Counted from the stretch's first letter, positions 23,615 to 64,000 are shown. The stretch is 64,000 nucleotides of DNA from Octopus sinensis (GCF_006345805.1 NC_043011.1:13404464-13468463), one strand, 5' to 3'. Notes: generated from the letters alone by a model not told the origin. Numbers and translations: made by a program.

Positions 23615-23658
23615 GTATGTTTCTTTTCAATTAATTTGGTTGATGACAATTACTAGTA

Positions 23659-28243: not shown

Positions 28244-28272
28244 TAAAAGACTTGAGCTTAGACTGTCTTTAA

Positions 28273-29482: not shown

Positions 29483-29567
29483 CTTTAAATGTTGGGTAGA
29501 TAACAAAAAAATGAATCTTAAAATTTATAATAGTATATGCATATTACACATTTTATTTCACTTTCAG

Positions 29568-29659
29568 GCCCAGCTTGCAAAGATGTTGATTCTCTAAAGA
29601 AGATGATGATTGAAGGAATGGATGTTGCCAGACTTAATTTTTCTCATGGATCATATGAA
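29568..29659 (+). CDS. Pyk: PK gene 1, exon B (92 bp)
   Basis: tttcAG / GTaaat; encodes (G)PACKDVDSLKKMMIEGMDVARLNFSHGSYE with the PK motif RLNFSHG. Confidence 0.97.
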
Positions 29660-30132
29660 GTAAATATCGGTTCTGTTTTTAACCTTTTAAATATTCATTT
29701 CAATGATAAAATTATTGCGATAATTTTAATCACACATGCAGGGTGTTTCAAATGTTTTGAGTCTGATAACGAAATAAAAATAGGTATTTTCTTTTCCTGC
29801 TGTTGTGTCCTTAAATATTTTAGTCTTACTTTTTTAACATCCCTTGTAAAACCTATTTCTTATTTTATTTTTAAGCAAATATATAAAATAATTTTAAGTT
29901 TTTACAAGTTAGAACTTTTATATTATGAATCTAATTTTTAGTCTGTAAAATAGTGGTTAACTCCTAATGTGTTTTGCTCTTTATTTTTTTATTTTTCTAA
30001 ACATAAGAATATTGGAAAGGTATCTTCATGTTTCCCTTTATATCTGTTAATTTCACCATAAATACGCTAATATGTAAAACAATTACATTTCATGGAAAGA
30101 TATATTTTACTGTTAAAAATTGTTTGTTTCAG

Positions 30133-30252
30133 TACCATGGTGAAACTATTAAGAATGTGAGAGAAGCTACCCAGAAGTTTGATAAACCGAAGATAATTGC
30201 TGTTGCACTGGATACAAAAGGACCCGAGATAAGAACAGGCCTTCTCAAGGGT
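30133..30252 (+). CDS. Pyk: PK gene 1, exon C (120 bp)
   Basis: tttcAG / GTaagt; YHGETIKNVRE...ALDTKGPEIRTGLLKG with the PK motif DTKGPEIR. Confidence 0.97.
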
Positions 30253-32099
30253 GTAAGTTGAGTTTAAAATTATTGAGAACACGAGAAATGTAAACCATTT
30301 TCCAGCTGAATTTGTAGGACTGATAAGGCTTCATTTACAAAAATTAAAAATGAGTAGCTTATGTGAAAATGTGCAATGTTGATTTGGTGTGACAATTAAT
30401 TTCTTGGTTTATTGTAGGCGGTTAACAACCGAGAGATTGAGCAAATGAAAGCAATTAATGTTGCATTATTTTGGTATCTGTTTTTGCAGACTTTTGAGAC
30501 TCAATAAGATCCTCAAAGTCTGATCTTCATGACCTTTTCAGTCATGCACATAAGATCCTTTTTAGATGTAGTACATGGACTACACTATTCACTGTGACCA
30601 TTTTTTCCTTTAAAATGGTTGTGATTTGATGGGATTTGGTTACTATTCGTAACAAGTCTAGTGATCCCTAATACTCTTTTACTGGCTCATTTGCTTTACT
30701 GTAGGATGTGGTCGTGACCATAGCAGGACAGTTGAGTGGATTTGATTGTAGTGCAATGGTTCTTTTGCCCCCATCATCATTGGTGTGCATATCAACACAG
30801 CTTTTAGGATGTTTAATTTTGTTTGATCATTTTGCTGGCATGGGTTGATAATTTTGTTATTGTGTTTGTCTGAAAAGACATAATATACATGCAGGTATCA
30901 CAATCAATCATTCTATTTAGGCTGCAGAGTATTGTGAAACAACAAGGGAATTTCTGTGGTTGTTCTATCTGCTAGAAATAGCAACCAAATTTCCATCAAA
31001 TCATGCTTGTCTTTGAAAAGGACACATTGCATAACATGGGCCTAGGTACCCTACACATGAAAAAAAGCAATGATGACAATGCTCTTGATCGTAAAGCTGC
31101 TTGATCAGGGCTAACTTGGGGCTAAACAACAATCTTAAGACTTCCAAACAGCATTATTGAGGAAACTTCAGTGTGCACAATACATTCTGATGATACAAAA
31201 ATAGCTCTTCCCTTAACCCTTCCACAGACATTAAATTCTGGATACATGGCTGAAATATACACCACACCACGCATTAATTTTATATATACACATTAGCAAA
31301 TTGCTAAATCATCCAATTATTTGGATGACAAAAACATAAATGCTAATGGTGAAGCGAGTCCAGAAGGGGCCAAAGGCAAGCTGGCTTAACTGATGAGGCA
31401 ACAGGAAATTGCTGAAACTGATGCATCAGTATTAAGCATTCTTGATTGGCATTTTTCGGATGATTATTATAATAATAATAATAATGAAATTATTGTATAC
31501 AGTGCTCTTGTCAAACTGGAGGATACCCCTGCTCCAGATCGATTTGCTGTCTTGCAGACTTTGACATATTTTCTGTTATTTGTTCTGTACCAGCCGCATT
31601 GTGGTTTCTGCAATTAGAGAGGATGGGGAACTTAGTTTTCTTTCTTTCTTTCTTCTTGTTCCATCTTTTTGCATCAGCCTTCATGTTTTTCTTATTTTCT
31701 CCCTGTCCAGTGCCCTAATTTTTTAAAATATATTTAACACATAAACTGAGCCTGACATGGTGTGTTTTATAAATATGCCTATTTAAGGTTACATAAAAGC
31801 ATGAAACTATCAGTAGCTCTTATGATAGCATGCTCTTAAGGTAGTGAGTGGCTATAACTACATGCCCTACTGGGTATGTAGTTATAGCCTAAATCTGAAT
31901 TGACATTTACTGCATTAGGTAGCTATTATATTAAGAATTTTGCATATACCATAATTAATTCTCTAATATTTTGAAAAAAAAGAACGAAAAAAAAAAACTA
32001 TCTAACAACGTTATTTCCAGTTTAGCATAGTTGGAAAATCTAGGATTCTGCCTTTTCCATCAGGAATGTGAGCAGGTAGTTTTGATTTATTTTAATTTT

Positions 32100-32460
32100 T
32101 TTTTTTTTCAATTCAATTCAATTTTTATTGGCTCAAAAAGCAAAAGCCATGTAGGGGTACAGGGAGTTATGTACAGGGAGGGTGGTCATACAAAGAGTTC
32201 AGGCCATTTCTGGTCAAGAGAGACTTTGAACCGAGCGGTCGTCGGCATCTTCACTATCTCGTCCGGCAGCTTATTCCACGAATCCACAACCCGGACGGAG
32301 AAAGCCCCTCTCCTTCGATTGAGATGAAATCGTTGTAGATAGACCTTTGCGGAGTGACCCCGCAGCCCATGCTCTGGAGCAGGAGTGAAGAACAGCTCTT
32401 TCGAGAGGTTACACTTTCCACTTATGATGTTTGAATGTCCCTTGATTAAGTTCCTTATCA
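32100..32460 (-). mobile_element. CR1-like LINE 3' fragment (second family)
   Basis: LRGHSAKVYLQRFHLNRRRGAFSVRVVDSWNKLP motif; (TTGAA)n/poly-A tail. Confidence 0.85.
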
Positions 32461-32609
32461 CTTGATGAATACTTAAATTTCTCAGATATTTTCAGAATAT
32501 TAGTTGTAAATATTGACTATAGATAATGAAAGTATATACAGTTTTGTTTTTCATTGATGATTGTTTTGATGTTTTTGAATACTTATTAATGACTTAAAAT
32601 TGTTTTCAG

Positions 32610-32796
32610 GGTCCCTCAGCTGAAGTGTCTTTGAAAACGGGAGCAAAAATAAAGATTACAACAAATGAGAGTGCTATGGAGGCTTGTGATGAAAATACTT
32701 TGTATGTTGATTACAAAAACATTACCAAAGTCATGAAAGTAGGATCTCGAATGTACATTGATGATGGCTTAATTTCTGTTATTGTTAAAAACATGG
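32610..32796 (+). CDS. Pyk: PK gene 1, exon D (187 bp, B domain)
   Basis: ttttcAG / GTaata; GPSAEVSLKTG...YVDYKNITK...YIDDGLISVIVKNM. Confidence 0.96.
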
Positions 32797-33504
32797 GTAA
32801 TATTTTTATTTGATTTTTATATTCTATCATATTTAGAAATCCAAGAATCTGTAGTACTCTTAAAAACAAAACGTTATTTTGATGTTTCTTATATAAGTGC
32901 CATAAAACTTGAAAGATTTATTTGTCAGTGCTTCTAATCTTCATAAACACATTGGATTGATTTGTGTTAGAATATATTGATCAAAAATAAAGCTGTGATA
33001 GAGAAAAGAGACGAATGATATATAATGGGAAATGGTTGTGGAAGAGTTTGGTTAATTGAAGGTGAAATAAATTAGCATTTATCAGCATTGAAAGAAAATG
33101 GCTTTTTTTTATATCTAAAGTGAGAAGAATAGAAAGATGGAAATACTATGAGTGTAATTATAAAAAAAAGAATGCAAAACATTAATAAAAAACAAATGTT
33201 TTTAACATCAGCATATAAATATTGATGGGTAATTATTCTCGTAGAATACTTTGAAGTATTTTATTTTCATAAGTTTCTCTGAAGTTCACTGGTTTAAGAT
33301 CAATGAACCTTTAACTTGATTTTGGTTCCTTTGTTCTGGTCCACTGGAGGATTTTATATTTACCAGGGTCTCACTATGCTATTGACCATTAACTGCTTTT
33401 ACAGCTGGTTATTCCTTATCAGTTCAAAATAGGAACAGCACTTATTTCCAGCTTGATAACATTAAACAAAGTATATTTTTTTTTAATTTGCATTTGTTTT
33501 TCCT

Positions 33505-34347
33505 CAGTCAGGCAACTGCAAAAGAAGTATTTAGTTAAGAACAAACTGTTGTACTTGGCATTTGTTGATCTAGAGAAAACCTTTGACAGGGTACCCCACT
33601 CTGTGATATAGTGGTCCTTGAGAAAGCTAGGGATAGATGAATGGCTTGTGAAAGCTCTATAGTACAGGAATGCTGGTAGTAAGTTAAGAGTTGGCCATGG
33701 GTACACTAAGGAATTTAATGTACAGGTCAGTGTTCACCAAGGGTCAGTTCTCAGCCCCCTCCTATTCATCTTCCTCTAGGCCATAACAGAGGAATTTAAG
33801 ATTGGAAGCCCATGGCAACGCCTATATTGCTGATCTTGCCCTTGTAGCTGAATTTGTAACAGAATTAGAAAAGAAATTCCAGATGTGGAAACAGAACTTG
33901 CAATCTAAGCATCTTAGTAAACTTAGCAAAAAATAAGGTCCTAGTGAGCAAAAATCAGAGAGGACCTTTCACCCATCAGGTAAATGGCCTGGCTTGGTAT
34001 ATAGGAAGGGTGTACGCAGAAATTCCTTTTGGTATACCCAGTGCAAGCCGTGGACACGCAAAAGGTGCAGTGGAATAGTTGGAAGATTAACGGAGAAAGT
34101 GTTCATACTTGGAAGACGTATGGGAGACATAAAGACCACAGATACACGGGAAACTGATATCCTTAAATATCCCGGTGACTTTCTGGAAGTTTTAGATAAT
34201 TTTTGCTACCCAGGTAACCTAGCAGTGGAGGAGGTTGTACAGAAAATGTAATTGATAGAATAAAAATAGGATGAAAAAAGTTCAGAGAGCTTTTACCAAA
34301 AGTCTTCCTCTCCAAGTGAAGGGAAGGGAAGGTTGTATGATGCATGT
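33505..34347 (+). mobile_element. RTE-like LINE reverse transcriptase fragment
   Basis: LYLAFVDLEKTFDRVP...VHQGSVLSPLLF RT motifs with stops and frameshifts. Confidence 0.85.
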
Positions 34348-34382
34348 AGGCCCTGGTTAAACTTGGTATCTTTAAATTGTAG

Positions 34383-34525
34383 GTTCTGACTATATGGATT
34401 GTGAAATTGAAAATGGTGGTGACCTTGGTAGTAAGAAAGGCTGCAATTTACCTGGAGTTCCTGTTGATTTGCCTGCTGTATCAGAAAAAGATAAACAAGA
34501 TTTGCTATTCGGTGTAGAACAAGAC
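34383..34525 (+). CDS. Pyk: PK gene 1, exon E (143 bp)
   Basis: ttgtAG / GTatgt; [47 protein letters not shown]. Confidence 0.96.
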
Positions 34526-34633
34526 GTATGTAATTTTTTTTTTTTTTTTTTTTTCTTCCAGAGTTTAATATTGAATATTGGTTTATTTTACAAAATCTTG
34601 ACACTTTCTCAATTTAATTCGTTTGTTATTTAG

Positions 34634-34761
34634 GTTGATATGGTGTTTGCTTCTTTTATAAGAAGTGCTGATGGTGTTCGAGAAATCAGAAAAATTCTTG
34701 GAGAGAAAGGAAAAGACATTAAAATTTTTGTGAAAATTGAAAACCACCAAGGCGTGAAAAA
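34634..34761 (+). CDS. Pyk: PK gene 1, exon F (128 bp)
   Basis: atttAG / GTaatt; [10 protein letters not shown]...[14 protein letters not shown], containing the catalytic K and E of the PK active-site signature (KIEN). Confidence 0.96.
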
Positions 34762-34840
34762 GTAATTATTTCAAATTAAATTTTTTGCTTCCCCATCAGT
34801 TTGTTGAACATCTTTGACAATTTTATTTCTTCTGTTTCAG

Positions 34841-34991
34841 CTTTGATGAAATTTTGAAGGAAACTGATGGGGTCATGGTTGCGCGTGGTGATTTGGGTAT
34901 TGAGATTCCTCCTGAAAAAGTGTTTTTAGCCCAGAAGATGATGATAGCTAAATGCAACAAAGCTGGTAAACCTGTTATTTGTGCCACTCAG
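34841..34991 (+). CDS. Pyk: PK gene 1, exon G (151 bp)
   Basis: tttcAG / GTatgt; [27 protein letters not shown]...KPVICATQ. Confidence 0.98.
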
Positions 34992-35708
34992 GTATGTATG
35001 TACATAATTGTTTGGTGTCTTTCATTATATAACCACTAAAATTGTTTTGTTTGCAGATCAAAAGTCATCAGTTCAGAATGTTCCATAGACATTAAATGTA
35101 ATATTTCACTGTCCTACCCTGATGTAATCTCCAGGATACAGGCATTCAGAAACAGGACCTCCGTAATGCTATGATGGACCATGAAGTCTAGCGTAACATA
35201 GTAAATTCCATTGTCTCGACCATGGTCGAACAATGATGATGAATATTTCAGCCTATTGGGATAGAAAATAAATACTAGTTGCAATTAACGGTTCATTTAA
35301 CTCCAGGAAGCTCTTAAAATTATCTTCAATTTAGAAAACTCATTCAGCCAGCTTTATCAATCTTATTTACTTTTAGCTTTAGTCTCTTTTGTTTATTTCT
35401 CTTAATGCAGACAATTCTATAATTATCTGATAATTCTTAAATCAAATGTTTTACCTGACATTTGTCAGCCTTTCAATTTAGTTTCAGTAAATTTTTGTTT
35501 TCTTGCTCACATCTATATATTTTCTTGGACATTAGCTGTTAACTATTTAAACTTAATTTGTCACAAGTTATCACACCAAGTGTAGTTTTATAGGCTTTGA
35601 AAATTCCATATCTGTTATTTATTTTGCTATCAAAACGAATTGTATTGTTGATACATTTAATTTGTACTGAATATATGCCTTTCAGTTCCAGTATCAATTA
35701 TATCCTTC

Positions 35709-35893
35709 GCAAATATAAGGACACAGGAAATGTGTCAAAGCCGACAGGAAGCGTCGATGCTTCCTAAGGCTATATAGGAGTGATGTAATTCCCTTTACGG
35801 GACTGTCACGTTATGTTGACAGTATACAACCACTATCGCTCCACCACCACTCATGTCTCTTTGAGACATTTAGAAATTCAATATTTCTAATTA
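35709..35893. mobile_element. Single-arm fragment of the same foldback element
   Basis: Matches 9390-9515 and continues as the reverse complement of 9024-9082. Confidence 0.8.
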
Positions 35894-36196
35894 TAATATT
35901 GTTTCAAGGAAATACTTTAGGTTGTTATTGCCAGGAATTAACCAAAGCTTTGTGAATGAAATTTGTTTGACGGAAGCTGCCTGTTGAAGAGATCCGTCTC
36001 TATTCTTACCTGGTTTAACACTGCCAGTTAGCCCTTGTATTCAGGTCTTTCACAAAGTTCACTCTGTAGCAAGCATTCAGGCAGATCTGTGTATGCATCC
36101 AAGTTAGAAAAGCTTATATATAAAGTAAATATTTTTTTTTTTTTTCGTTATTGAGGTTGCTTACATTTCACAGAGATGATCAATTTATTTTATCAG

Positions 36197-36349
36197 ATGT
36201 TGGAAAGTATGGTGAAGAAACCACGTCCAACTCGAGCTGAAGCTGGTGATGTTGCAAATGCTGTTCTGGATGGTGCAGACTGTGTTATGTTGTCAGGAGA
36301 AACTGCCAAAGGCTCCTATCCTTTGGATGCTGTTCGTATGATGGCTAAA
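36197..36349 (+). CDS. Pyk: PK gene 1, exon H (153 bp)
   Basis: tatcAG / GTaggt; [15 protein letters not shown]...[15 protein letters not shown]...MMAK. Confidence 0.98.
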
Positions 36350-37507
36350 GTAGGTGTTGATTGATAATGTTCAAAGCTATTTTATGATTTGTTATTAGTA
36401 TTTTTGTTGATTAGTATTTTTACAATTTTAATAAATTTGCCAAATTTTGTACGTTTAAAAAAATTTTTTTTTTTAACCATGTTAGGTGATAGACATAATC
36501 TGTTTCCTAGTTAAACATAACCTTTGTTTTAGCAGCTGTCTTTGTTGCAAACATTTGGGCTAGGTCAGAGAGTAACTTCCTCCCTTAAAGCTACGCTTTT
36601 GGGCACAAGCACAAGCAGGGCTGTTATAGGGTGCTAACCTGGCTGTGTAGTTAAGAAGTTGACTTTAAAACCACATGATTTGGGGTTTGCTCTAACTGTA
36701 TGGACACTGTTGGCAGGTGTCCATTGCTGTAGCCACACATTGACTAATAGCTTGTGAGTGAAATTTAGTAGGTAGAAACTGGAAAAAACCCCATTATGTA
36801 TGTGTTTGTGTTACTGTGTATTTCCTTTATCTTGATAAGTACATGCTTATTCTAAAGAAAACACTACCCTTCATACATATGGTATTATTTGTTTGCAATC
36901 TTATGTGGAAGCATGCCTGGGCTGTTTATTGTTTGGTTAGACCGTGGTTAATGTTACCTTACTTGGGTGACAGTCGGTGATAGTTCAAGCATCAAGCCAT
37001 AGAAAATTCTGCCTCCATGTAGTCTCATGTGACTTGTGCAAGCATGGGAAAAGAAATGTTGAAATGCTAATGATGAAAATGAGTTTATCAAAATTGGTTA
37101 ACATTGTAAATTGTGGTCACTGTAGACGTTATCCATAGCCTGTTTATTCATTCAAAATCTTTGCTGCTGTCATCTAGGATGTAGTAAGCACTGCTAAGGC
37201 TATGGTTCATGGAGGTCTATCAAGACAAACTTAACAACGGTCACTTGCTCCACAATGGATGCCTTATTTAATTTTTGTATTTCAAATTTCTCTCCCCTGC
37301 TATAATGAAGCTTAATATTATTTTGTCTCTCTACATCTACTTAGTCATTCAGTAAATTCTTTCCTCATTGTCTACATGTGTTTTGGTTCAGGCATAATTG
37401 TTTAGCTGACGAATTCAAGTTATAATAACATTCGTCTGGCTTGAGTTCACCAAGCAATGCTTTGAGCATCCTATTCTTGGGGGAAGAAATACTGCAAACA
37501 AGATTAA

Positions 37508-37727
37508 CCCTTTCGTTACCAACCCGACTGAAACTGGCTCTGGCTCTGAATACAAATGTCTTGTTTTCATAGATTTTGAATTAAAATCTTCCACGAAACC
37601 TTAGTCACAACTTATGTTCCTAACACTAGCTTAATGATAACTAAGTTATTTTACTAAATTCTTTGTCATATTTAAAATAATTGAAGGAAACACAGAGCAT
37701 CTCAAAATAAATACAGTAACAAAAGGG
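37508..37727. mobile_element. TTAA-flanked non-autonomous element, relative of 28273-28619 in opposite orientation
   Basis: TTAA-CCCTTT start; ends AAATACAGTAACAAAAGGG, the reverse complement of the start of the 28273 copy. Confidence 0.55.
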
Positions 37728-38376
37728 TTGAAGATAAGGACTTCTGGGCTGAGTTTGATGGCAAACAATGGCTGATGGAGTACTTTTGGAAGGAAGAACC
37801 CTCCATGTTGAGAAACAGTGAGCTGCTATGAAAACATTCCTGAAAGGAGAGGCTAGGAATGAGTTTGAGAGAAAGGTGGCCAAATGGATAGAGGAGAGTA
37901 TTTCTATTTTATAGAAAGAAGTGAAGAAGATTATGTTGGCAATAGTCAGGCTGAAAAAGAATAAAATCTGGCCAGTGCTAGACTTTTAGGAGCTGGAGGA
38001 GTGCATATCATGTCATACAGGCCGTGAGCCGGGAGCTATGATCGTTGGTATATCTGCAGTTCCACTTAACCTTTCTCTTGGTTTAAACTATCACCTGCCC
38101 CTTGGGTATCTTTTAATGGTTCACACTACTGCAAACATTCAGAGCAGGTTTCTAGTCTGAGAATAACTTCATATTATGATGCACTGCTTTTTTTTCCTTT
38201 GACATGTTCCTCAGTCTCAGATTTGTTCCTTTTTAAATATAGACTTAATGTACATTAAAATTTTCATTATAGAAAACCTTAGCAGTGTAACTGTATTATT
38301 CTCAGTTATGTAAATTTAAAGAATTTTTATCTTCCAATATGATTAATACTGTTGTTGTTCTATGTATTTTTCAAAG

Positions 38377-38543
38377 ATTGCTCGTGAAGCTGAATCTGCT
38401 GTGTTTCATAGTCAACTGTTTGAAGAACTCAGACGTCAGACACCAACTCCAACAGATGCTACCCACACCGTTGCAATTGCAGCTGTTGAAGCTTCATTCA
38501 AGTGTCATGCTGCTGCTATCATTGTTATTACAACAACTGGAAG
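38377..38543 (+). CDS. Pyk: PK gene 1, exon I (167 bp; equivalent of vertebrate PKM exon 9/10)
   Basis: tttttcaaAG / GTcagt; [11 protein letters not shown]...[11 protein letters not shown]. Confidence 0.95.
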
Positions 38544-38689
38544 GTCAGTAATATCAAAAAGTTTTGTAGCTTTGAATGATGAATGAAAATATATTGGCTC
38601 TCTCTCTTTCTCTCTCCCCACTCCACCTTCGGCGTAGGTTACACATTAGTGACTTCAAACTACAGGCACAAAGGATTCTAAGAAGCAAG

Positions 38690-40520
38690 CCAATTTGGAA
38701 AAGGATTATCCGGAAGCTTCAGTCTCTTTTGAAGAGACATCCTAACTGAAGCATTTAATGAGGAGGAGGAGGAGTTACTGATTTGTAACATCGAGGATAA
38801 CTGGATGTTCCTACAAGACAACTTACTGAAAGCCACAGACCAAGTTTGTGGTTAGCCCCAACCAAACCTAGGGTGACGTGGTGATGGAACTGTGGTTGAC
38901 AGGAACATTAAAGCAAAGAAACATGCTTGGAAGGACTGTTAGTGTGGCAGTAGCAAGAAGGCAGCTAGAAGGGAATCTAGAAAGGGTGGTGAGCTGGCAG
39001 AATCGTTAGCACGCTGTGCGAAATGATTAGCAGTATTTCGTCTGCTGCTACGTTCTGGATTCAAATTCCACCAAGGTCGATTTTGCCTTCCATCCTTTTG
39101 GGATCGATTAAATAATTACCAGTTACGCACTGGGGCGATATGATCGACTTAATCCCTTTCTCTATCCTTGTTTGTCCCCTCTGTTTAGCCCCTTGTGGGC
39201 AATAAAGAAATAAGGGAATCTAGGAGGCAGGTATACTTAGCTAGGGGTGAAGCAGAAAGGAAGAAGTTTGCCATGTTCTGTGGAGTGAGGACCAGCAATT
39301 TCAAGTGTTTTGGTTTGCAAGATAGTGTGCCAGGGAAACTTGTGATGTTGGAGAGAAGTATTTGCATGGATGATGATTCATTTGCAGTTAGTAGAACTTC
39401 CAAGCCTCTTTCTTTGCAGAGTCACTATGAAAGGCTGCTAAATGTGGTGAACTCATGGGAGAAGGAGAATCTGAATAGAAGTAGCATGGTAGATAAGGCC
39501 ATGAAGGATATGAAGACCAGGAAAGCTCCCAGTCCATCAGGCAGTGTGGGTTATGGTCTAGTCACCCATATAGTTAATTGAGTTGTACACGAGGGAATCA
39601 TCCCAATGACTGTAGCAGCACCATAGTTGATTGGTACAAAGGTAAAGGTGACACTTTAGACAGACATAAATACAGAGGATCAGGTGATGAAAGTGATTGA
39701 GAGGGTCATAGCCCAACTAACTTGGAAAAGGTGCAATAAACACTATAAACATACAGAAGATTGATTCTATCAAATGCCAGAAGCGACACCTAGAAGTAGT
39801 TGAAAGCTTCTGTTGTCTAGGTGACCAAGTCTGCTGTGGAGGTAGATGCGCCAAGAATGTAGCTGCTAGAATAAGAATAGGCTGGGCAAAGTTCAGAGAG
39901 CTTCTACCTTTGTTGGTAGCAAAGGACCTCTTCCTCAGAATGAAAGGCAGATTGTATGATGTTTGAGTGAGAACAGCCATGTTATATGGCAGTGAAAGTG
40001 GAGCCGTGACTGCAGAGACATGTGAAGGCTTGAAAGAACCGAAGTTAGCATGCTTCGCTGGATGTGCAACGTCAGTGTGCATGTACGAGAGAGAAAAATT
40101 GGGCATAAGAGACAGCTGTGCTGGTATGGTCAAGTACAGTTGTGTAAAGATGTGCCAATCTCTATGGAGGAAACTTGTGATAGAGGTAGACCCAGGAAGA
40201 CGTAGGATAAGGTGGTGAAGCATGATCTTTGAATGTTGGGCCTTATGCAGGTGATGATAAATGGAGAACTTTGATGTGTTGTGCTTAAGACATGTCAAGC
40301 CATGTGAAATCAGTCACGGCCAATGCCGGTGTAATGCAACAGGCACCTGTACTGGTGGCACATAAGGGCACCTGTGCCAGTGGCACGTATGAAGCACCCA
40401 TTAAACTCTGTGTTCGGAAGGGCATCCAGCTGTAGAAGCGGGTACAGCTCTCTGGTTTACCAGTTCCAGTTAAACCATCTAACCCATGCCAACATGGAAA
40501 GCAGATGCTAACTGATAATG
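38690..40520 (+). mobile_element. Decayed RTE-like LINE running into its 3' UTR, interrupted by a SINE
   Basis: RTAMLYGSE motif, ORF2 end (CCCAGGAAGAC...), continuous into family C sequence and GAT tail; shares sequence with 33505-34347. Confidence 0.75.
38985..39214 (+). mobile_element. SINE family A inserted into the RTE fragment
   Basis: Matches 55277-55510. Confidence 0.82.
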
Positions 40521-40562
<42 letters not shown>

Positions 40563-41632
40563 GGAGTATGTCACAAACCTTTGCTCTTTACTTTTTCAGT
40601 CTATAGACTGTGGCCATGCTGGGGCACTGTTTTGAATTTTTAACTGAATGAATAGACCACAGTACTTTTTTTTTTTTTTTCAAACCTTGGTGCTTATTCT
40701 ATCAGTCTCTTTTGCTAAAAATAGGCAATTCTCTCACAAGTCATATCCTGTCCTTAAAAACACAAGGACTACATTAGACAATGGTGTTCTAGATAGGTTT
40801 CCTGAGAAGATGGATGATTACAGGTCTGTTAAATGTGGACTGAACAACAACAGACAATGTATGTTCTTTTAAAACCATCTTAACTAATCTCAAATATCGT
40901 TCTTAAATTCTCCGACAGATAAAATCTAATCTGTAAACTGAGGAGTTTCCTTGAAAAGAAATTAGTTTTTACAGGCTTTGAGAATAATGAGGAAGTGATT
41001 AACATCAAAATTTGAAACTTGTTAAATATTTTTCTACTGCTTAGCTTCAAAACCTTGCAGGTATTTATTTGCATCTACTTGTATTTTCTCAGCAAACTGC
41101 AGAACATACTTTCCTTTCAAATGACCTGTTTTGCTGATAGTTCTAAAATCTAGTCTTTGGTGATGGTAAATAGACTTTTGTTTACTGCCCTACTCATCTA
41201 TAGAAAACTGAAGTCATGGCTTTTCTTTTAATTAGAAACAATTACCAGATTATTTTGATCATTTCGTTTTTTCCTTTGCATGAGAAAACTTTAGTGTTCA
41301 AATTATTCTGCCAAATGCAATGCTTATGTATTCACATTTTGAATTTATCATGCATTATCCCATAGTTTTGGGATTTTGATGTTGTGAATGTTTATTTTTA
41401 GAATTACATTGTAGGGTAGGTGTGAGAGGCCATATCTAGCCAGTTTGAACACAAAACAGGTAGAACATTTGGGCTGGATCTGGCTGGTTTAAATGCTAAA
41501 GGGTTAATGACTGTTAAAATCTGAAAGATCTAATTTAGTAAACTAAATAAAATTTTCAGATTTAACTATTGCAAATAAAATGTTACCTATTACATTGCTT
41601 CTACCCTTGTATTGCTGCTATATATATATATA

Positions 41633-42013
41633 TACTCTTTTACTTGTTTCAGTCATTTGACTGCGGCCATGCTGGAGCACCGCCTTTAGTCGAGCAAATC
41701 GACCCAAGGACTTATTCTTTGTAAGCCCAGTACTTATTCTATCGGTCTCTTTTGCCGAACCGCTAAGTGACGGGGACGTAAACACACCAGCATCTGTTGT
41801 CAAGCAATGCTAGGGGAACAAACACGGACACACAAACATATACGCACACGCACAGGCTTCTTTCAGTTTCCGTCTACCAAATCCACTCACAAGGCATTGG
41901 TCAGCCCGGGACTATAGCAGAAGACACTTGCCCAAGATGCCACGCAGTGGGACTGAACCCGGAACCATGTGGTTGGTAAGCAAGCTACTTACCACACAGC
42001 CACTCCTACGCCT
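41633..42013 (-). mobile_element. SINE family B
   Basis: Near-identical to the other family B copies. Confidence 0.88.
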
Positions 42014-42111
42014 ATATATATTTATGAACTGCAATAACTTTTCATTCAAATGTGTCTTGAAAATCAGTAGCAGTTGTAAGTTTTGTTATATATTTTTTTT
42101 GCATTTTTTAG

Positions 42112-42230
42112 GTCAGCTCATCTTATTTCTGCCTATCGTCCACGTTGTCCAATCCTGGCTGTTACTAGAACTGCACAGGTTGCTCGCCAGGCTCACATGT
42201 ATAGAGGGATTATTCCAATTTATTATGAAG
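42112..42230 (+). CDS. Pyk: PK gene 1, exon J (119 bp)
   Basis: tttttAG / GTaagt; [19 protein letters not shown]...[15 protein letters not shown]; ends in phase 1. Confidence 0.96.
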
Positions 42231-43952: not shown

Positions 43953-44161
43953 AGAAAAGAGACAGTCAATGGACTGAGGATGTTGATAAACGCATTCAGA
44001 GAGCTCTGGAAGCTGGGCATGACCATGGGTTTATCTTCAAGGGAGTTCCTCTAGTGATTGTGACTGGTTGGAAATCTGGTTCAGGCTTCACTAACACGCT
44101 GAGACTTATCAATGCACCCGGCAGAGATGAAATGACTCCTATTATGGCCAGTCACTTTTGA
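43953..44161 (+). CDS. Pyk: PK gene 1, proximal terminal exon K (209 bp incl. TGA)
   Basis: ctacacAG acceptor, phase 1; (E)KRDSQWTEDVDKRI...VIVTGWKSGSGFTNTLRLINAPGRDEMTPIMASHF*; exons A-K sum to 1614 nt = 538 codons with no internal stop. Confidence 0.95.
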
Positions 44162-45133
44162 ACGATGTGATTTTGATGATGCTGGGTTGCCAGTTCTTTA
44201 GAGACTTACTCTAAACTCCTGTTTCAATTTAGTGACCTTTTTTTCTTATATAGAATAACAGATGTCTACCCTGTCTTAAATAGGGACTTACTTTGTAGTA
44301 AATACAATCATGTACTTATCCTTTCCATGAAAAGTGTGACTATAAAATTAAGTGATTTTAGTAATACCTTTTGACTACTTCTGCAGCAACATCTAAAATA
44401 TTAAGTATAATAATACTTGGAGCTTTCGTTTCTCAATTTTTCATTTCTTTCTATGCTAATCCCGATGGTGATTTCATTGTTTTTACTTTCAAGATGAAGG
44501 TTTACATAAATTTCTGTACAAGAAACTTTCATTGCTAAGAATTTTTGAAAAGAAATAATCATGTCTAATAGAAAAAAATAACGATCTGAAGCAAAATAAC
44601 ACAGTTGTTAACATGAATAACTTGTTCTAATATAACATTAGTTCAACTTCCAAAATTATTTTGTATTTAAAGCTGTTTAAAGACTCAAAATCTACAATGT
44701 GTTATACTCCTGCAAGTATTTCATTTGTTTGATTCATTTGTTTTTTGTTTTTTTTTTTTTTTCAACTGGGACCAGAATTTATAAAATTTCAAAATGCAGT
44801 TTTGAAATTTTGAGCTACATGGTTCCTTTGTAATTTTGTAAACTAAAAAATATTTCATATTTTAGTTGATACTCATTGAATACGACAAATATAACCCAAT
44901 ATATTTGGCAAATCTAATGTAAAATATCTTAGTTATAGAATTTATTGTAGTACGTTTCCTGAATATGAAGTATAAGTTGAGCTAATTATTTCATATATTT
45001 AAAACTCATGAATAGATTTTTCTTTCAAAAGTCTTGTAGGAATACTTTCTATTTGTTTTAGTTTTTAATTTTGATGTTTTAGGACATTTTTTCTTTGTTT
45101 TATGAAATCTTCATTTTTGAGATACAATATTTC

Positions 45134-45186
45134 AATAAATTGTAGATTTGTTTGTGTCTAAAATGGTTTGTTAAATTGTTAATAAA
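45134..45186 (+). terminator. Candidate poly(A) signals for the exon-K isoform
   Basis: AATAAA at 45134-45139 and 45181-45186, about 1 kb after the stop; hexamers are common in AT-rich DNA. Confidence 0.35.
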
Positions 45187-45845
45187 TGTGTGCAAATACT
45201 TTTTTAGTCGTCCTTGTCATTTATCCCTTATTTATTTTGTTTTTTTTTTTCTCTTTGAAACTGACAATTTTAATCCCATTTTAAAATCTACCTCCTTCTG
45301 CTTGGAAGTGCTTTTGGCTAACATTTAACTTTGGTTAACTAATTGGTTACTGGTCTTTTTCCTGCAATGTCTACCCAGAAAGCTTTAATTTTCTGCTGTC
45401 TCTAACATTCCTTTTCCCAACCTATTCTTCATCTATTTAGGTCAGTAAAAGAGAAATTAAATTTTAACAATTTGAAATGTTTCTTTAATTTTTGTAAATA
45501 TAGTGGACTGGAAAAATGCATCAACAAATGGTTGCAAGCATAACTGAGATTAAATTCTCTTCACAACAATATGGTAACGGGTTTGATCCCACTTTGCTGC
45601 ACCATGGGCAAGTGTCTGAGGGAAATTTCTGGAGAAAAAAACTATGCAGATGCCTGTTATGTGTATATTTTTTATTTGTCTTTTGGAAATTCTTTGATGT
45701 TTTACTTTGTAAGGGGAGGTAAGTTTCTTAGTGGGAATGGATGGTGGCGCTATTAGGACCTCAATTATTTGTTACATAAAATGAATGCTAAACTTAGAAT
45801 TAAGCTTGATATAAATTGTCTGTTGGTGTTTCCTCAACATAGTTA

Positions 45846-49749: not shown

Positions 49750-49985
49750 AGGCTGCTGCAGATGATCCTATGGTGGATTTGGATAGGAGGATTTATCGTG
49801 GAATAGGAATTGGCTTACAATTAAAGACAATAAAGAAAGGCGATCATTTGGTGATCATGAGTGGTGTTCGTCATAACAATGAATGTAATGACACTGTAAG
49901 GGTTCTAGCATGTCCAGCTATTTCTGGAGAGATGCCTCCTATTGCTGGTTTTAAGCCCCTACCAAAAAATACACTTGGATTTTAA
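49750..49985 (+). CDS. Pyk: Probable alternative terminal exon K2 of PK gene 1 (236 bp incl. TAA)
   Basis: tttgatttttattattgtAG acceptor, phase 1 like exon K; open to TAA; (E)AAADDPMVDLDRRI...KKGDHLVIMSGVRHNNECNDTVRVLACP... aligns gap-free with exon K over 56 aa (17 identities); AATAAA at 50051 and 50104. Confidence 0.78.
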
Positions 49986-56545: not shown

Positions 56546-56745
56546 CTAATATGTCATCGGAAGCGGATCATTTTCACCGGGCACTGTAGCCACACACATC
56601 GTATCAGTGGAACCACTGCCTTCAGTCCAACCACGCACCAGCATAACTCGGTCTTTGACTTTCAAGAATCCTCTTTCCACTGCATTCTCAAAGGCTTTCT
56701 TGATTCCTAAGTTGTAATCTTTTTCCCAAAAACCAGTAACTGGGC
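56546..56745 (-). CDS. PK paralog, terminal exon K' (200 bp incl. TAG)
   Basis: ttttacctgcAG acceptor, phase 1; (S)PVTGFWEKDYNLGI...VRGWTEGSGSTDTMCVATVPGENDPLPMTY*; gap-free with exon K over 56 aa (16 identities). Confidence 0.92.
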
Positions 56746-58098: not shown

Positions 58099-58217
58099 TT
58101 TGGTCAATGACTGGAAGAACTCCACGATAGAGATGGAGCTGCCTTGCTGTGATTGGTGACCTTGTGACTGCAATCACTATGCAACGTGGTCGATAACGAG
58201 AGATGAGAGCAGCAGAT
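58099..58217 (-). CDS. PK paralog, exon J' (119 bp)
   Basis: ttacAG / GTaaga; [39 protein letters not shown]; same size and phases as exon J. Confidence 0.94.
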
Positions 58218-58937
58218 CTGTAAATTGATATGTAAAATGTCCATGTAACATTACACTTAAATATTATCAATTGCTCAATTTAGTCATGTCAAAGATTATA
58301 ATCCACGAAATGAATTTTGTAATACATAGTTATATAATTTTTGTTGTAATTTAGTATAAAGAACTCTGTTTTCAATGCTATGTACAACAATGGAGCAATT
58401 AAGGTACTGAACTCATTGTTAATAATTAAAAAGTTTGGCAGAATAGTTAGTACACTGGGCTAAATGCTTAGTGGCATTTTGTCAGTCTTTAGGTCCCGTG
58501 TTCAAATTCTGCCAAGGTTGACTTTGCCTTTCATCCTTTCGGGGTTGATAGAACATGCACTGGGATTGATATAATTAATTTAATCTCTTCCCCGAAATTA
58601 CTGGCCTTGTGCCAAAATCTGAAACTTGCCACTAGGACTTCATTATTTGCTACTGTATCTTCATATGTTTTGTTTCAAATGCAAATGTTAAAAACTTATA
58701 ACATTTGTGTTGACTAATTTAATAAATTTTTTTTTGTAATTTTGTTTTAAATTTCTGCAAAAAATGGTGAAAAAAGTGTCAGTTTCTTCGGTTTTCCCTT
58801 AAAATGCAATTGTAAGCATACTCACATTTCACTACTTCATCAAATTTGTATGAACTTAAGACTGCTGATATCTGGTTGATGCAAATCATACATTCCTAAG
58901 TCCATTAAATCATTGCTAAATACAATATACATACATA

Positions 58938-59140
58938 TACTCTTTTACTTGTTTCAGTCATTTGACTGCGACCATGCTGGAGCACCGCCTTTAGTTGAAC
59001 AAATCGACCCCAGGACTTATTCTTTGTAAGCCCAGTACTTATTCTATCGGTCTCTTTTGCTGAACCGCTAAGTGACGGTGATGTAAACACACCAGCATCG
59101 GATGTCAAGCAATGCTAGGGGGACAAACACAGACACACAA

Positions 59141-59175
<35 letters not shown>

Positions 59176-59347
59176 CATATATACGACAGGCTTCTTTTAG
59201 TTTCCGTCTACCAAATCCACTCACAAGGCATTGGTCGGCCCGGGGCTATGGCAGAAGACACTTGCCCAAGATGCCATGCAGTGGGACTGAACCTGGAACC
59301 ATGTGGTTGGTAAGCAAGCTACTTACCACACAGCCACTCCTGCGCCT
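58938..59347 (-). mobile_element. SINE family B
   Basis: Near-identical to the other copies. Confidence 0.88.
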
Positions 59348-59562
59348 ATCAAGCCCAACACATATTCATTATATCAAACATTTATGCCAGTAAAGATATT
59401 GTTAAACAATTAAGTTTTCCTTGCAATCATTAGGTCACAGACTCAATGTTGCTGTGACACTCTGGGTAAGTTCTCTTCTGCCATAACCTTGGGCCTGGGG
59501 TGATGGACTGAACTTCTAACACAAAATGCAAGCTGTGTGATGCTGATTCTGTCTGGGGATTA

Positions 59563-59777
59563 TACTCTCTTTACTCTCTTTTACTTGTTTCAGTCCTTTG
59601 ACTGCGGCCATGCTGGAGCACCGCCTTTAATCGAGCAACTCGACCCCAGCACTTATTCTTTGTAAACCCAGTGCTTATTATATTGGTCTCTTTTGCTGAA
59701 CTGCTAAGTGACGGGGACATAAACACACCAGCATTGGTTGTCAAGCAATGCTAGGGAGACAAACACAGACACACAAA

Positions 59778-59815
<38 letters not shown>

Positions 59816-59981
59816 TTCGATGGGCTTCTTTCAGTTTCTGTCTACCAAATCCACTCTCAAGGGTTTGGTCGGCCCGAGGATATAGTAGAAGACACTTGCC
59901 CAAGATGTCACGCAGTGGGACTGAACCCGGAACCATGTGGTTGGTAAGCAAGCTACTTACCACACAGCCACTCCTGTGCCT
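59563..59981 (-). mobile_element. SINE family B
   Basis: Near-identical to the other copies. Confidence 0.88.
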
Positions 59982-60720
59982 ATTATATTGCAATTAAAGT
60001 GAGTACGGACTTGTAGGTGCATTACCACCCTTGACAGCGGGTAAACAAGCTGGCTATACAGAGAGAGGGCACTACACAACATTGAGGTTCAGCACGTGAC
60101 CTCATCTCTTCTTTTCTGCATGGACACGCAAGCTATGAGGACGCAACTTGACTGGCTCTATCTTAGGCTTCAGGCCAGCTAGCGGATAGGAACACAGTAC
60201 AGAAGACCATAGCCCTTACATGCCAACCATTCTGTTTGTCGTTCCATTATGTATGTATGAGGCTCAATAACGACCACCACCATCTAAAGACTGATCACCC
60301 ATTTACACGAGGTTGGAACATTTATTATGAACTTTTTTGATTTGCAATCCTTGTAATTGCAGGCCTCATTATGTAAAAGTGCAGAGTAAGTTTGTGGGGT
60401 TTGAAAGAATCACTTGCTTCATATGCTACAAACACTGAAACACTTAATAAAAAATACATAACTCATCTCAACTTCATTTGATTAGAAGACAAATTATTAA
60501 TTCCATTTCATATTAGAATGATAGAAGATATCTTCAAAGACTTTTATAGATCTTACTTTTGTAACCCATCCAACTTATTTGTGAATGGTGGAATGGTTAG
60601 TGTTGAATAAATTACTACTCTTTACATTCTGAGTTCAAATCTTGTGAAAATCAAATTTGCTTTTATTAACCCTTCCAGGGTTAATAAAATAAAGTACCAG
60701 AGTTGATTTAATCAACTACA

Positions 60721-60766
60721 CTATACCCTTTCCTACTATACCCTTTCCTACTATACCCTTCCTTTG
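60721..60766. repeat. 15-bp tandem repeat x3
   Basis: CTATACCCTTTCCTA repeated three times. Confidence 0.85.
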
Positions 60767-61089
60767 TACTAATGTTGAACTCATTAAACAGAAATAGAAA
60801 AAGGAAAAAAAAACAGCTATGGGCTTGGGAACATGGGGTGAAAGTACACCTAAAGTTCCTGGTGGGTACAAAATCAAAATTTGCACCCCTACTTACTTTT
60901 CTCAGGTTTAGAAAACAGTGCACAAAAAGTAGCTTGAAATTAGTTTTCTTCTCCAAAAAAATTTTTTAAATCAAAGAATAAAAATAAGTAAAAAACAAAC
61001 AATAAGACCTTGCTTGTAAAAAATTTTGACCCTGGGTTTGCACCCACTAAGCAAATTTTGTTTCCAAGCCAGTAGAAACAGTTACTTAC

Positions 61090-61256
61090 TTTCCTGAAGA
61101 AGTTACTACTACAATAGCTTTTGCTTCACAGCTGATTGCTCCCTTCACGGCTGCAAGAGCTGTGGCCTCCTCTTTGCTCAAACGAAAATCACTGATTGTG
61201 CTCAAATCTTTCATAAATTGGTAAGCGAACATAGCCCCTTCAGCTTCACGACAGAT
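61090..61256 (-). CDS. PK paralog, exon I' (167 bp)
   Basis: ttgcAG / GTaagt; ICREAEGAMFAYQF...ATALAAVKGAISCEAKAIVVVTSSGK; same size and phases as exon I. Confidence 0.93.
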
Positions 61257-61386
61257 CTGCAAAGCAATTCACAAAAAGTTAAACTAGAAATAATTATTAA
61301 AGACATTTTTTTTATTTGTCCCACATCAGTTTGAAACTTGTTTGATGTCATGATGAAAGTCCAGTTTTCAGAGTTTTTCATTAGAG

Positions 61387-61605
61387 CAGCATTTCCCAAC
61401 TGGGGTTCCACAATACATTCCTAGGGGTTCCCCGAGAAAGTGTGAGATAAGCTAATGCTAATTTCATGATCGTAATATTACTATACATGCACAACATATT
61501 ATTGATTAATGTAATATTATAATATTAAATAAATATATATCATCATCATCGTTTAGCATCCGCTTTCCAAGGGTTACGCTAGGGTAAAAAGGTTGAGAAA
61601 CACTG
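61387..61605. mobile_element. hAT-type MITE in a paralog intron
   Basis: Termini CAGCATTTCCCAAC / GTTGAGAAACACTG; 8-bp flanks CATTAGAG / CATTAAAG. Confidence 0.75.
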
Positions 61606-63119
61606 CATTAAAGTAAGGTGGTATGAAACTTTCCAAGAATATTTAGGGTAGATTTCCTGATGTGTTGATTTCACTAGGATGAATGCTTTTGATTAGGAAA
61701 ATATAGACAAATAGAACAGACCAAATAACAGAGATGTGTGGGAAAAAATTAAAATAGCAATTGAAATGTTAAAACAACGTAGAGTATAGTATTTCAAGCA
61801 AAATAATATTTGTGGAGTGAGAAATATGATTTTCTTATTTTCCAGTTATTTTCCTGTTATTCTGGCATTTTTATTTACATCATCATATTCTCAGTAGTAA
61901 CTTTCACCATGTACATTTTTCAACAATACCACCAATTTGAAAAATCAAATATTCATGTATACAGACCAAAATGTAATTATCACAAAGTTTAGTAAAATAC
62001 CTGCTGTCATTATTGACTGTTTGGCTATTCAAATACTCAAACAAAAAACAAAAACCATCTTGATATGTGAAGGACACAGATTGTTAAAACAGATCAACAC
62101 AGTCCATCTTACCTATATGTTAAATGATCTATAAACACTATCTCTCACACTTAGTTCAAACACAACAGCACATATACACACATAAATAACTGTAGCATTA
62201 ATAACTTCTTTAGTCTGATACAATGCACCAGGGTGTGTACTACTAGGGTTAATTGTCATAATCATTTTAAGTCCACCTTCCATGCTGGTATGAAGGCTTG
62301 TCATGGTCTGAATCCTTTCTCATTTGTACTCAGGCATTCATGCACGATAATATTACACACCCACTGGAGCATGCTAACTTTATTTTTTGGCTCACCATTC
62401 ATTACCTATTTTTTTTTACACACTGTTAGAAGTGCTAAGTCAAAACACAATTCTTTGTGGTTAATCAACAGTAAAATATGGAATTTATTAAAACCATCAC
62501 TAACATCTACTTTTTAGTTTGACTTCAGACGTTTTAAAACACAGAATTTTTAGAAAAGATTTGGAATCAAGATCACCTTATAATTTTGTTTCATTTTGAC
62601 TAAACATAAAGACTCTACATTTTAATGCTTTTGTTATCATATTTCTATTAAAACACTCTTTGTTCAATTTATGTTGAAAATAATAAAGAATTTAGTAAAA
62701 TAAAATGTTATCATTAAGTTAGTGTTTGGAACATAAATAAACATTAAATTTTGATGGAAGGTTTTAAAGCAAAATGTTTGTGTTATAGAACTCAAGAGTG
62801 GTGGCCTTGGGCAGGTTGACATCAAAAGGGTTAAGAGAGAATTGATCAATGTGATGTTTTTACTTTTCTTAAGAGCAATAGTTGTATGGATAAAGTGAAG
62901 TGTGAAAAGTTTACCTCTTACTTTTTGCCATGTACATGTAATCGCTGCAGTATTAATAGCTGTAAGCTAATCAGACACACAGCAAAAGAAGGAAAGATAA
63001 AGTGACTGAATGGTTCTGTCAACAACACAACTGCACTACCAGAGTAGACAGTTAAAATTCTTGCAAAGATTTTGAGGATATTTGCAACTACTGTTTGATA
63101 TAAATCTCTTATTTCTTTA

Positions 63120-63343
63120 TTGTCCACAAGGGGCTAAACATAGAGGGAACAAACAAGGACAGACAAAGGGATTAAGTCGAATACATCGACCCCAGTGCAC
63201 AACTGGTACTTAATTTATTGACCCCGTAAGGATGAAAGGCAAAGTCGACCTCGGCGGAATTTGAACTCAGAACATAATGGCAGACGAAATACCGCTAAGC
63301 ATTTCGCCCGGCATGCTAACGTTTCTGCCAGCTCACCGCCTTG
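63120..63343 (-). mobile_element. SINE family A
   Basis: Reverse complement of 55277-55510. Confidence 0.85.
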
Positions 63344-63854
63344 ATATATATCTCTTAGTATAGCCAAGAAGAAAGAGAAATTTGCCAAGTAGATTGTTCC
63401 TCTGGTGCTTATATTAGAGAAGGAATTAATGGAATACATGAGAGTTTTAGGTTGAGGGTTTTCTTTACCAGTGCCGCCTTGACTGGCTTCCATGCCGGTG
63501 GCATGTAAAAAGCACCAACCGATCGTGGCCGTTGCCAGCCTCACCTGGCACCTGTGCCGGTGGCACGTAAAAAGCACCCACTACACTCATGGAGTGGTTG
63601 ACATTAGGAAGGGCATCCAGCTGTAGAAACACTGCCAGATCAGACTGGAGCCTGGTGCAGCCTCCTGGCTTCCCAGATCTCAGTCGAACCGTCCAACCCA
63701 TGCTAGCATGGAAAATGGACGTTAAACGATGATGATGATGATGATGACGATGATGTTAGCTGCATTTAGAGTTTTCAAAGGAGTAGATTAGTAGTACAAT
63801 AAATTACTATCTTTTAAGCTATAAAATTATTGCAGTATAACCTTGTAGCCTTAC

Positions 63855-64000
63855 CTGCACTAAAGTTTTGATGCTTTGTATTACATATTTTCCTTTAGCA
63901 GTTTCAGATGACAACATAACACAATCAATGCCATCTAAGACAGAATTAGCGACATCTCCTGCTTCAGCACGGGTAGGTCGAGGATGTATGGTCATACTCT
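63855..64000 (-). CDS. PK paralog (gene 2), exon H' (runs off the window edge)
   Basis: Reverse strand reads (E)[48 protein letters not shown] then a GTaagg donor; homologous to exon H. Confidence 0.93.

Follow-up and report, generated by a model that had tools for sequence, protein, structure and literature searches.

Vertebrate PKM makes two forms of pyruvate kinase (PK), PKM1 and PKM2, and this pair is the textbook example of alternative splicing that resets an allosteric enzyme, which is relevant to cancer metabolism and to the contrast between muscle and proliferating tissue. PKM1 has a last exon identical to that of PKM2, and is not activated by fructose-1,6-bisphosphate (FBP). In the PKM2 structure, W482 and R489, which are located on helix C-alpha5, bind the C1 phosphate of FBP (PMC10338316). 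The backbone of G514, R516, G518, and F521 keeps the effector loop in place, together with stacking of W482, P517, R516, W515, and F521; both this loop and the last strand are found at the C-C interface (PMC4448766). Replacing the Arg in the PKM2 variant R489L gives a KD for FBP of 14 mM, compared to tens of nM for the other variants of the same study (PMC6636998). PK effector sites are also known to change their ligand through changes in the loop (PMC4448766). Here, we describe a PKM-like gene of Octopus sinensis with two homologous last coding exons, K and K2, which encode different versions of this part of the enzyme.

The window, by which we mean the whole stretch of 64,000 nt that was analyzed, is AT-rich animal DNA and is placed on CM016873.1 in GCA_006345805.1. 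A tblastn search with human PKM2, for which an approximate sequence that is one residue too long was used as probe only, found a full PK exon set on the plus strand between 23.4 and 44.2 kb, an additional last exon with a weaker match at 49.8 kb, and, on the minus strand, the 3′ half of another PK gene, from 64.0 down to 56.5 kb. Exon boundaries were set by splice consensus and reading frame and then compared with a spliced transcript of O. bimaculoides (Logan contig L007), which matches each exon from A0 to K. As listed in Table 1, the coding exons of the PKM-like gene span 21133-44161 on the plus strand, and the second terminal coding exon, K2, lies 5.6 kb beyond K. The upstream exons join in frame to K and to K2 alike, using the same split Glu codon, and the two proteins have residues 1-491 in common and differ only in the last 69 (K) or 78 (K2) residues. 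Exon K encodes helix C-alpha5, a strand, the canonical effector loop TGWKSGSGFT, the last strand and a short tail, and K2 encodes a helix, a strand, the degenerate effector loop SGVRHNNECN, the last strand and the tail EMPPIAGFKPLPKNTLGF. No third copy of the terminal exon was found in a search of the interval between K and the paralog.

The interval 49750-49920, to which the original prediction referred, turned out to be the first 171 nt, the PK-homologous part, of the 236-nt exon K2. All five peptides quoted in that prediction were located in the proposed frames: SQWTEDVDKR (43964-43993) and TGWKSGSGFT (44063-44092) in K, DDPMVDLDRR (49761-49790) and SGVRHNNECN (49860-49889) in K2, all on the plus strand, and RGWTEGSGST (56606-56635) in K′, on the minus strand. 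Exon phase, joining and gene models also bore out that a single gene has K and K2 as its alternative endings, and that K′ belongs to a paralog.

Table 1. Features of the two PK genes in the window (slashes mark exon boundaries)
Feature	Position	Strand	Details
Alternative first coding exon, MGSACCKGLTAVK	13470..13508	+	Exact peptide match followed by gt donor; matches P0126 and P0130; N-terminus of RefSeq X1/X2
Alternative first coding exon, MANQ	15430..15441	+	N-terminus of isoform X3
Coding exon A0, MAQLLAQPGAGELQRIHSSPFGL	21133..21201	+	100% tblastn match to Argonauta P0002 N-terminus; mapped by L007; acceptor ttctcag/ATG, donor gttagt
Shared coding exons A-J, whole block	23470..42230	+	tblastn against PKM2, splice sites, in-frame joining, L007
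Exon A	23470-23614	+	
Exon B	29568-29659	+	
Exon C	30133-30252	+	
Exon D	32610-32796	+	
Exon E	34383-34525	+	
Exon F	34634-34761	+	
Exon G	34841-34991	+	
Exon H	36197-36349	+	
Exon I	38377-38543	+	Encodes the 432-437 phosphate loop, TTTGRS
Exon J	42112-42230	+	Ends in phase 1, ...TATGAAG/gtaagt
Terminal coding exon K	43953..44161	+	E492-F560 and TGA (44159-44161); acceptor cctacacag/AG, phase 1
Exon K 3′UTR	44162..45200	+	AATAAA at 45181-45186; L007 aligns to ~45200, poly(A) after AATAAA
Terminal coding exon K2	49750..49985	+	236 nt; E492-F569 and TAA (49983-49985); acceptor ttattattgtag/AG, phase as K
Three clustered AATAAA	50051..50123 (50051, 50104, 50118)	+	66-133 nt past the K2 stop
K′, last coding exon and TAG of separate PK paralog	56546..56745	-	Acceptor cctgcag/GC, phase 1; loop RGWTEGSGST
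Paralog upstream exons J′ ~58228-58118, I′ ~61262-61089, H′ ~63998-63852	58118..63998	-	tblastn with PKM2 and P0139

Several other features of the locus were observed. The peptide encoded by A0, MAQLLAQPG.G.LQRIHSSPFG, is near-invariant in all cephalopod PK sequences seen, and its R-x-x-S-S could be a phosphorylation site, comparable to the N-terminal control of L-type PK. The MGSACCKGLTAVK first exon is kept in O. bimaculoides as MGSACCKSLTAVK; its Gly2 together with Cys5/Cys6 fits N-myristoylation plus palmitoylation, so that a membrane anchor is possible for some PK isoforms. In the annotation, this N-terminus occurs both with the K ending and with the K2 ending. In O. vulgaris, the 1482-aa model CAI9736291.1 fuses a cytoplasmic aconitase to the PKM-like PK, therefore aconitase is probably the upstream neighbor of the gene; aconitase-coding sequence was not found within the window. 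A foldback element of ~300 nt is located at 50346-50651, 360 nt downstream of K2, and consists of nested inverted repeats of 81 nt and 67 nt with 81-87% complementarity, preceded by (TA)n and (CATA)n. It is present at the orthologous site in O. bimaculoides as well, and looks like a MITE. Repeats encoding VYQIHSQG[FI]GRP occur on both strands at ~2630-2680, 41872-41913, 52554-52595, 53774-53824, 59206-59247, and 59840-59940, thus flanking and inside the PK genes, and are probably an interspersed transposable element family.

The existence of the K2 exon is already contained in RefSeq models, and the exon as such is not new. The rebuilt 569-aa protein with J joined to K2 is exactly XP_029646191.1 ('pyruvate kinase PKM isoform X4 [Octopus sinensis]'), and the rebuilt 560-aa protein ending in K is exactly WET32014.1 ('pyruvate kinase [Octopus sinensis]'). 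Among the RefSeq models of O. sinensis, which are predictions, the K2 ending is present in X1, X3, and X4, and the K ending in X2. K2 also terminates CAI9736291.1, a model from O. vulgaris, and GAB1605874.1, a model from Argonauta hians. In the genomic sequence of Argonauta (L001), J is followed by K 2 kb on, by K2 5 kb further, and then by the tail-to-tail paralog, with acceptors and phase identical to those of the window.

Could K2 nevertheless be a decaying duplicate or an annotation artefact that does not give a functional enzyme? Its fast evolution would be in line with this, since amino acid identity to Argonauta is 52% for K2 versus 93% for K (and 83% for K′), and so would the absence of relatives of K2 alone in two word-based searches and of an annotated K2 isoform in O. 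bimaculoides. Transcript sequences speak against it. A metatranscriptome of another cephalopod (spA) contains both a K-type protein, P0004 (562 aa), and its K2-type partner, P0152 (571 aa). The contig encoding P0152 (L006) has an uninterrupted open reading frame across the J/K2 junction (GAA G/CT) and ends in poly(A) after an AATAAA ~130 nt past the stop, and because of these two features we consider it a mature mRNA. In a fourth cephalopod (spD), the K2 exon (P0136) was found on RNA contigs, preceded by an intron-type acceptor (ttcttccag/CT). Both P0152 and P0136 have the K2 of the window as best match (E = 1e-12 and 1e-11, respectively) and do not match K. Splicing from J to K2 is documented by a spliced and polyadenylated mRNA in one species, and is predicted by gene models in O. 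sinensis, O. vulgaris, and Argonauta. For the junction of J with K, there are the transcript L007 from O. bimaculoides and WET32014.1, a record of the cDNA type. A look-up of contigs with the exact 569-aa K2 isoform returned no transcript on record, and the same look-up with the isoform X1 protein returned only the source genome.

The K2 exon has also been maintained as coding sequence. Its length is equal in all four species, frame and phase are kept, and none of the copies contains a frameshift or stop, while only 1.4% of random 78-codon windows in the neighboring non-coding DNA are free of stops. The proportion of nonsynonymous changes was lower than that of synonymous changes (pN < pS) in each of the six species pairs (Fisher p 9e-3 to 1e-9). 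Between O. sinensis and Argonauta, dN/dS was 0.32 for K2, 0.11 for K, 0.08 for K′, and 0.03 for J. The dN of K2 was 0.34 and that of K 0.03, so K2 evolves ~10 times faster at the protein level and is therefore under weaker constraint. In the part of the protein that is shared by the isoforms, identity to Octopus is 93% for Argonauta and 86-90% for the species from which P0003, P0004/P0152, and P0136/P0139 derive. Judged by this identity, the latter are cephalopods further from Octopus than Argonauta; that they are decapodiform is a guess.

The missing O. bimaculoides annotation has a simple cause. A run of 577 N in this genome (L008 47295-47871) corresponds to window positions 49523-50135, and lies exactly over K2 and its flanks, which explains why no K2 isoform is annotated. 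The run is bounded by homopolymer tracts, and is either an assembly gap or masking in the stored copy. As to the searches, the K2 peptide alone gave no candidates in a word-indexed protein search, and an alignment of two K2 sequences gave two candidates, neither of which was significant. Because the Argonauta K2 exists, these nulls reflect the sensitivity limit of word searches. An exhaustive profile search resulted in three short matches, of which P0136 is a true K2 ortholog and the other two are ordinary molluscan K-type fragments. A metagenome scan with the K2 peptide of P0152 yielded only PK C-termini of soil bacteria (45-48% over 40 aa), and no cephalopod sequences.

Taken together, the O. 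sinensis PKM-like gene has in K2 a true alternative last coding exon: K and K2 use a common donor and phase, each has its own stop and its own polyadenylation signal, and the layout is the same in Argonauta. That K2 is an artefact or a decaying copy is largely refuted, and we regard it as highly improbable.

Two observations on neighboring sequences may be added. In the comparison of exon K with its Argonauta counterpart (L001 19450-19656), dS was 0.29, compared to 0.75 for J, 1.06 for K2, and 1.23 for K′. This low value hints at constraint at the RNA level, for example on elements for the choice of splicing or polyadenylation, or on editing-site structure. In another set of Logan RNA contigs, from one cephalopod (L003-L005), a spliced mRNA contig of the paralog continues through the K2 exon in antisense, so that transcription of the convergent PK genes overlaps in this species. 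K2 is located ~700 nt past the paralog stop in these contigs, and the distance between the stops of K2 and K′ in O. sinensis is 6.5 kb.

K and K2 are homologous, tandem-duplicated exons that encode the same structural elements. They can be aligned without gaps and are 36% identical over 56 aa (pairwise E = 1e-8), a similarity that is not due to chance. The Pfam domain PK_C (PF02887) was found at 427-543 in both isoforms, with 114.2 bits for K and 99.1 bits for K2, and the PK domain (PF00224) scored 506.5 and 506.6 bits, respectively, so that both domains are above the gathering score. In an identity matrix based on ~60 columns, in which the K2 branches are very long, the identity of K2 to cephalopod K did not exceed that to the last exons of other lophotrochozoans. 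AlphaFold2 (AF2) models of both isoforms, built from the same 48-sequence alignment, have the same fold and the same helix-strand-loop-strand order, with mean pLDDT values of 87.0 (K) and 85.8 (K2), and the helix and both strands are present in K2. The modeling against PKM2 that the original prediction had proposed confirmed the fold of K2 (TM 0.95). The models of the two isoforms differ at a single place. In the K model, residues 529-540 form a 12-residue coil between strands 524-528 and 541-545, and the K2 model has an extended beta-hairpin (524-533 and 536-545) in its place. This modeled difference is no more than suggestive, as the confidence at the tip is low in both models (pLDDT ~54).

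The residues that line the FBP pocket of PKM2 were then compared (Table 2). Gapless alignment with PDB PKM2 chains, in which octopus numbering is offset by +16, equates Pro498 of K2 with W482, Arg505, the second Arg of DRR, with R489, and S529-N538 with T513-T522. The phosphate loop at 432-437 is encoded by the single-copy exon I, and is therefore common to both isoforms; its sequence, TTTGRS, is also that of PKL. Combined with this loop, W498, R505, and TGWKSGSGFT give the K isoform a full human-type FBP site by residues, in which only R516K and P517S are changed. The alignment to PKM2 thus upheld the claim that K retains the pocket residues encoded by the last exon, namely W482, R489, and the loop. 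The human segment had been quoted as DAWAEDVDLR, which was incorrect, as the actual sequence is ...QEAWAEDVDLR.

Table 2. Residues at the FBP-pocket positions of PKM2. K, O. sinensis; K2, O. sinensis/Argonauta/spA (P0152)/spD (P0136, P0139); K′, O. sinensis/Argonauta/spD
PKM2	K	K2	K′
W482	W	P/P/W/Y	W/W/W
R489	R	R/R/R/Q	G/G/S
T513	T	S/G/S/S	R
G514	G	G/S/G/G	G
W515	W	V/V/Y/F	W
R516	K	R/Q/Q/Q	T
P517	S	H/H/P/P	E/K/E
G518	G	N/T/T/S	G
S519	S	N/N/H/H	S
G520	G	E/E/G/K	G
F521	F	C/G/F/F	S
T522	T	N/N/N/N	T

In K2 of O. sinensis, W482 is replaced by P, W515 by V, P517 by H, G518 by N, G520 by E, and F521 by C, and R489, G514, and R516 are kept. The isoform has thereby lost Trp482, both loop glycines (G518 and G520) and four of the five loop-stacking residues, so the original prediction was correct on the loss of the Trp and the replacement of the loop. 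The motifs [TS]GW..G.G and W...R are retained by nearly all of 120 animal PK relatives, with the K2 forms of cephalopods as some of the rare exceptions. Five cephalopod sequences have an identical K loop, TGWKSGSGFTNT, whereas each of the four K2 orthologs has a loop of its own. Since P0152 keeps W482, R489, G520, and F521, the loss of the site is graded and lineage-specific, and judging from these residues it may be complete only in octopods. The presence of KKGD in K2 and FKGV in K, which had been pointed out before, is real, but the difference is incidental, as other K2 orthologs read KKSA, NTGD, and KRND.

Based on these residues, the K form is predicted to be an FBP-responsive enzyme, with the proviso that the residues are necessary but insufficient for FBP activation, because vertebrate PKM1 carries the identical last exon and is not activated. 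For K2 of octopods, the best reading is a loss of canonical FBP binding and activation, and on balance we lean towards it, because the stacking residues and both glycines are gone, and the loop drifts between species. The earlier expectation of an FBP-insensitive K2 is thus supported in its direction by the contrast between an invariant K loop and a variable K2 loop, while it stays a prediction from sequence. Retention of Arg489 in three of the four species and of the common 432-437 loop makes residual binding of FBP, or of another phosphorylated ligand, possible. Both an enzyme locked in the active state, comparable to PKM1, and a low-affinity form may be what K2 encodes, as either is compatible with its sequence.

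A different interpretation would be that K2 re-tunes rather than loses control, with the TTTGRS loop and Arg489 binding a different phosphorylated ligand, such as a sugar monophosphate, AMP or another bisphosphate, in the way that bacterial and trypanosomatid PKs use the same site. Changes in the loop are known to alter the effector ligand of PKs (PMC4448766), exon I keeps TTTGRS, R489 is kept in the K2 of three of the four species, and all four K2 loops contain a His and have [RQ] at 516, with an invariant Asn at 522. However, a new specific pocket is expected to be conserved, and the K2 loop is poorly conserved, with NNEC, TNEG, THGF, and SHKF at 518-521, and with a His that is at 517 in the two octopods but at 519 in spA and spD. 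Such variability is expected of a lost ligand site rather than of a new one. We therefore consider a change of ligand unlikely, and the suggestion in the original prediction that K2 might bind another effector is the less likely of its two alternatives, as no new conserved loop motif is present.

The main effect of K2 could also lie elsewhere, in tetramer stability through the C-C interface, or in partner binding or localization through the longer tail (LPPI.G.K.L...), in which case the altered loop would be a by-product. The C-C interface is indeed where the last strand and the loop are found (PMC4448766), and the existence of N-terminal variants is a hint of localization control. Furthermore, few parts of K2 are as well conserved across the four species as the tail motif [ML]PP[IL].G.K.L, which is similar to PPI[TV]GISS, the tail in other molluscs. 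Yet K has a tail as well, in a short form (TPIMASHF), the model confidence of the K2 tail is moderate (pLDDT 61-75), and K and K2 differ most strongly and most consistently in the residues that line the effector pocket. This explanation seems quite unlikely to us, and the loss of the canonical FBP response in octopod K2 is the reading that we follow below.

The third last exon, K′, ends the neighboring convergent paralog, and is not an additional ending of the PKM-like gene. The window holds the last four exons of this gene, which runs off the window end, and the tail-to-tail arrangement is kept in Argonauta and O. bimaculoides. With a dN/dS of 0.08 for K′, the paralog is, by this estimate, under strong constraint. 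K′ keeps W482 and the G-x-G loop, and Arg489 is replaced in all three species (by Gly, Gly, and Ser), in agreement with what had been noted for the octopus exon. The absence of Arg489, together with the KD of 14 mM of PKM2 R489L (PMC6636998), predicts very weak FBP binding by the K′ pocket. In the one species for which the paralog is available at full length (P0139/P0140, from the cephalopod loci L003-L005), active-site and metal-site residues are non-canonical compared to PKM2, with N75V, S77A, H78Y, T114I, K115A, D296N, and E300N, whereas R73, R120, K270, and E272 are kept. It has a Pfam PK score of 324 bits, versus 506 for the main gene. The paralog may therefore have altered or weak catalysis, and may differ in far more than its regulation.

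These results can be combined in the following model. K2 arose by tandem duplication of the terminal exon K. Exon J, ending in phase 1, would be spliced to either the proximal K or the distal K2, with splicing coupled to polyadenylation. Use of the K acceptor and the poly(A) site near 45.2 kb would give the canonical enzyme, and skipping of K would give the K2 enzyme, with its own stop and poly(A) signals. The exchanged residues comprise helix C-alpha5, the last two strands, the effector loop, and the C-terminal tail, and thus the half of the FBP pocket for which the last exon codes. With TTTGRS and Arg489 retained and the other pocket residues gone, K2 would show no canonical FBP binding or response. 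The choice of terminal exon would then provide an isoform that is effector-independent or differently set. The structural part of this explanation is close to certain, and the explanation as a whole, an alternative last exon combined with loss of the canonical FBP response, we judge to be probable.

A broader view is that coleoids have independently evolved a switch like PKM1/PKM2 by means of the terminal exon, with an FBP-responsive K and an FBP-blind K2 in different tissues or states. We put this at slightly below an even chance. An N-terminal variant that is acylated and possibly targeted to the membrane, and a paralog with altered metal ligands, may add further layers to such a switch. If true, this independent exchange, which affects the opposite half of the pocket, would represent a clear instance of convergence in gene architecture, and a natural loop-swap experiment on the coupling of FBP binding to tetramer activation. 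It could also underlie tissue-specific PK isozymes in cephalopods, with their extreme burst-muscle and hypoxia physiology. Guderley, Storey, and Hochachka are said to have published kinetic papers on octopus and squid PK isozymes in the 1970s. Our literature searches on octopus and cephalopod PK isozymes, O. sinensis PK, and alternative splicing of mollusc PK returned nothing relevant and no description of K2, and the regulatory reading of K2 appears to be unpublished.

How does this locus relate to described systems? The trypanosomatid PKs that are activated by F26BP, and the bacterial PKs that respond to AMP or sugar monophosphates, use the same C-domain pocket with a changed loop and a different effector response (PMC4448766), but these are whole-gene orthologs with conserved and characterized loops, whereas the K2 loop is isoform-specific and poorly conserved. 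The pocket of the FBP-activated enzymes PKM2, PKL/R, and yeast Cdc19 is reproduced by exons K and I together (TTTGRS, W482, R489, and G514-T522); compared to these enzymes, K2 lacks W482, W515, P517, G518, G520, and F521, and K′ lacks R489. As in alternative last exons in general, there is a common upstream donor, and a proximal exon with a poly(A) site is skipped to reach the distal one. However, most alternative last exons are unrelated in sequence, whereas K and K2 are homologous duplicates encoding the same structural elements. The closest parallel is vertebrate PKM1/PKM2 (exons 9/10), where one PK gene likewise contains two duplicated exons of equal phase, one of which is used per mRNA, and where the products differ only in ~56-78 residues of the C-domain at the FBP pocket and C-C interface. 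The FBP site is retained in one vertebrate form and goes unused in the other, and the octopus counterpart of this difference is predicted from the residues. The two systems exchange opposite parts of the site: vertebrate PKM swaps ~381-435, with K433 and the 432-437 loop, which corresponds to the single-copy exon I of the octopus, whereas the octopus swaps ~476-531 and the tail, with W482, R489, and the 513-522 loop. Finally, the vertebrate exons are internal cassettes, whereas those of the octopus are terminal and have separate stops and poly(A) sites. The two arrangements are of independent origin.
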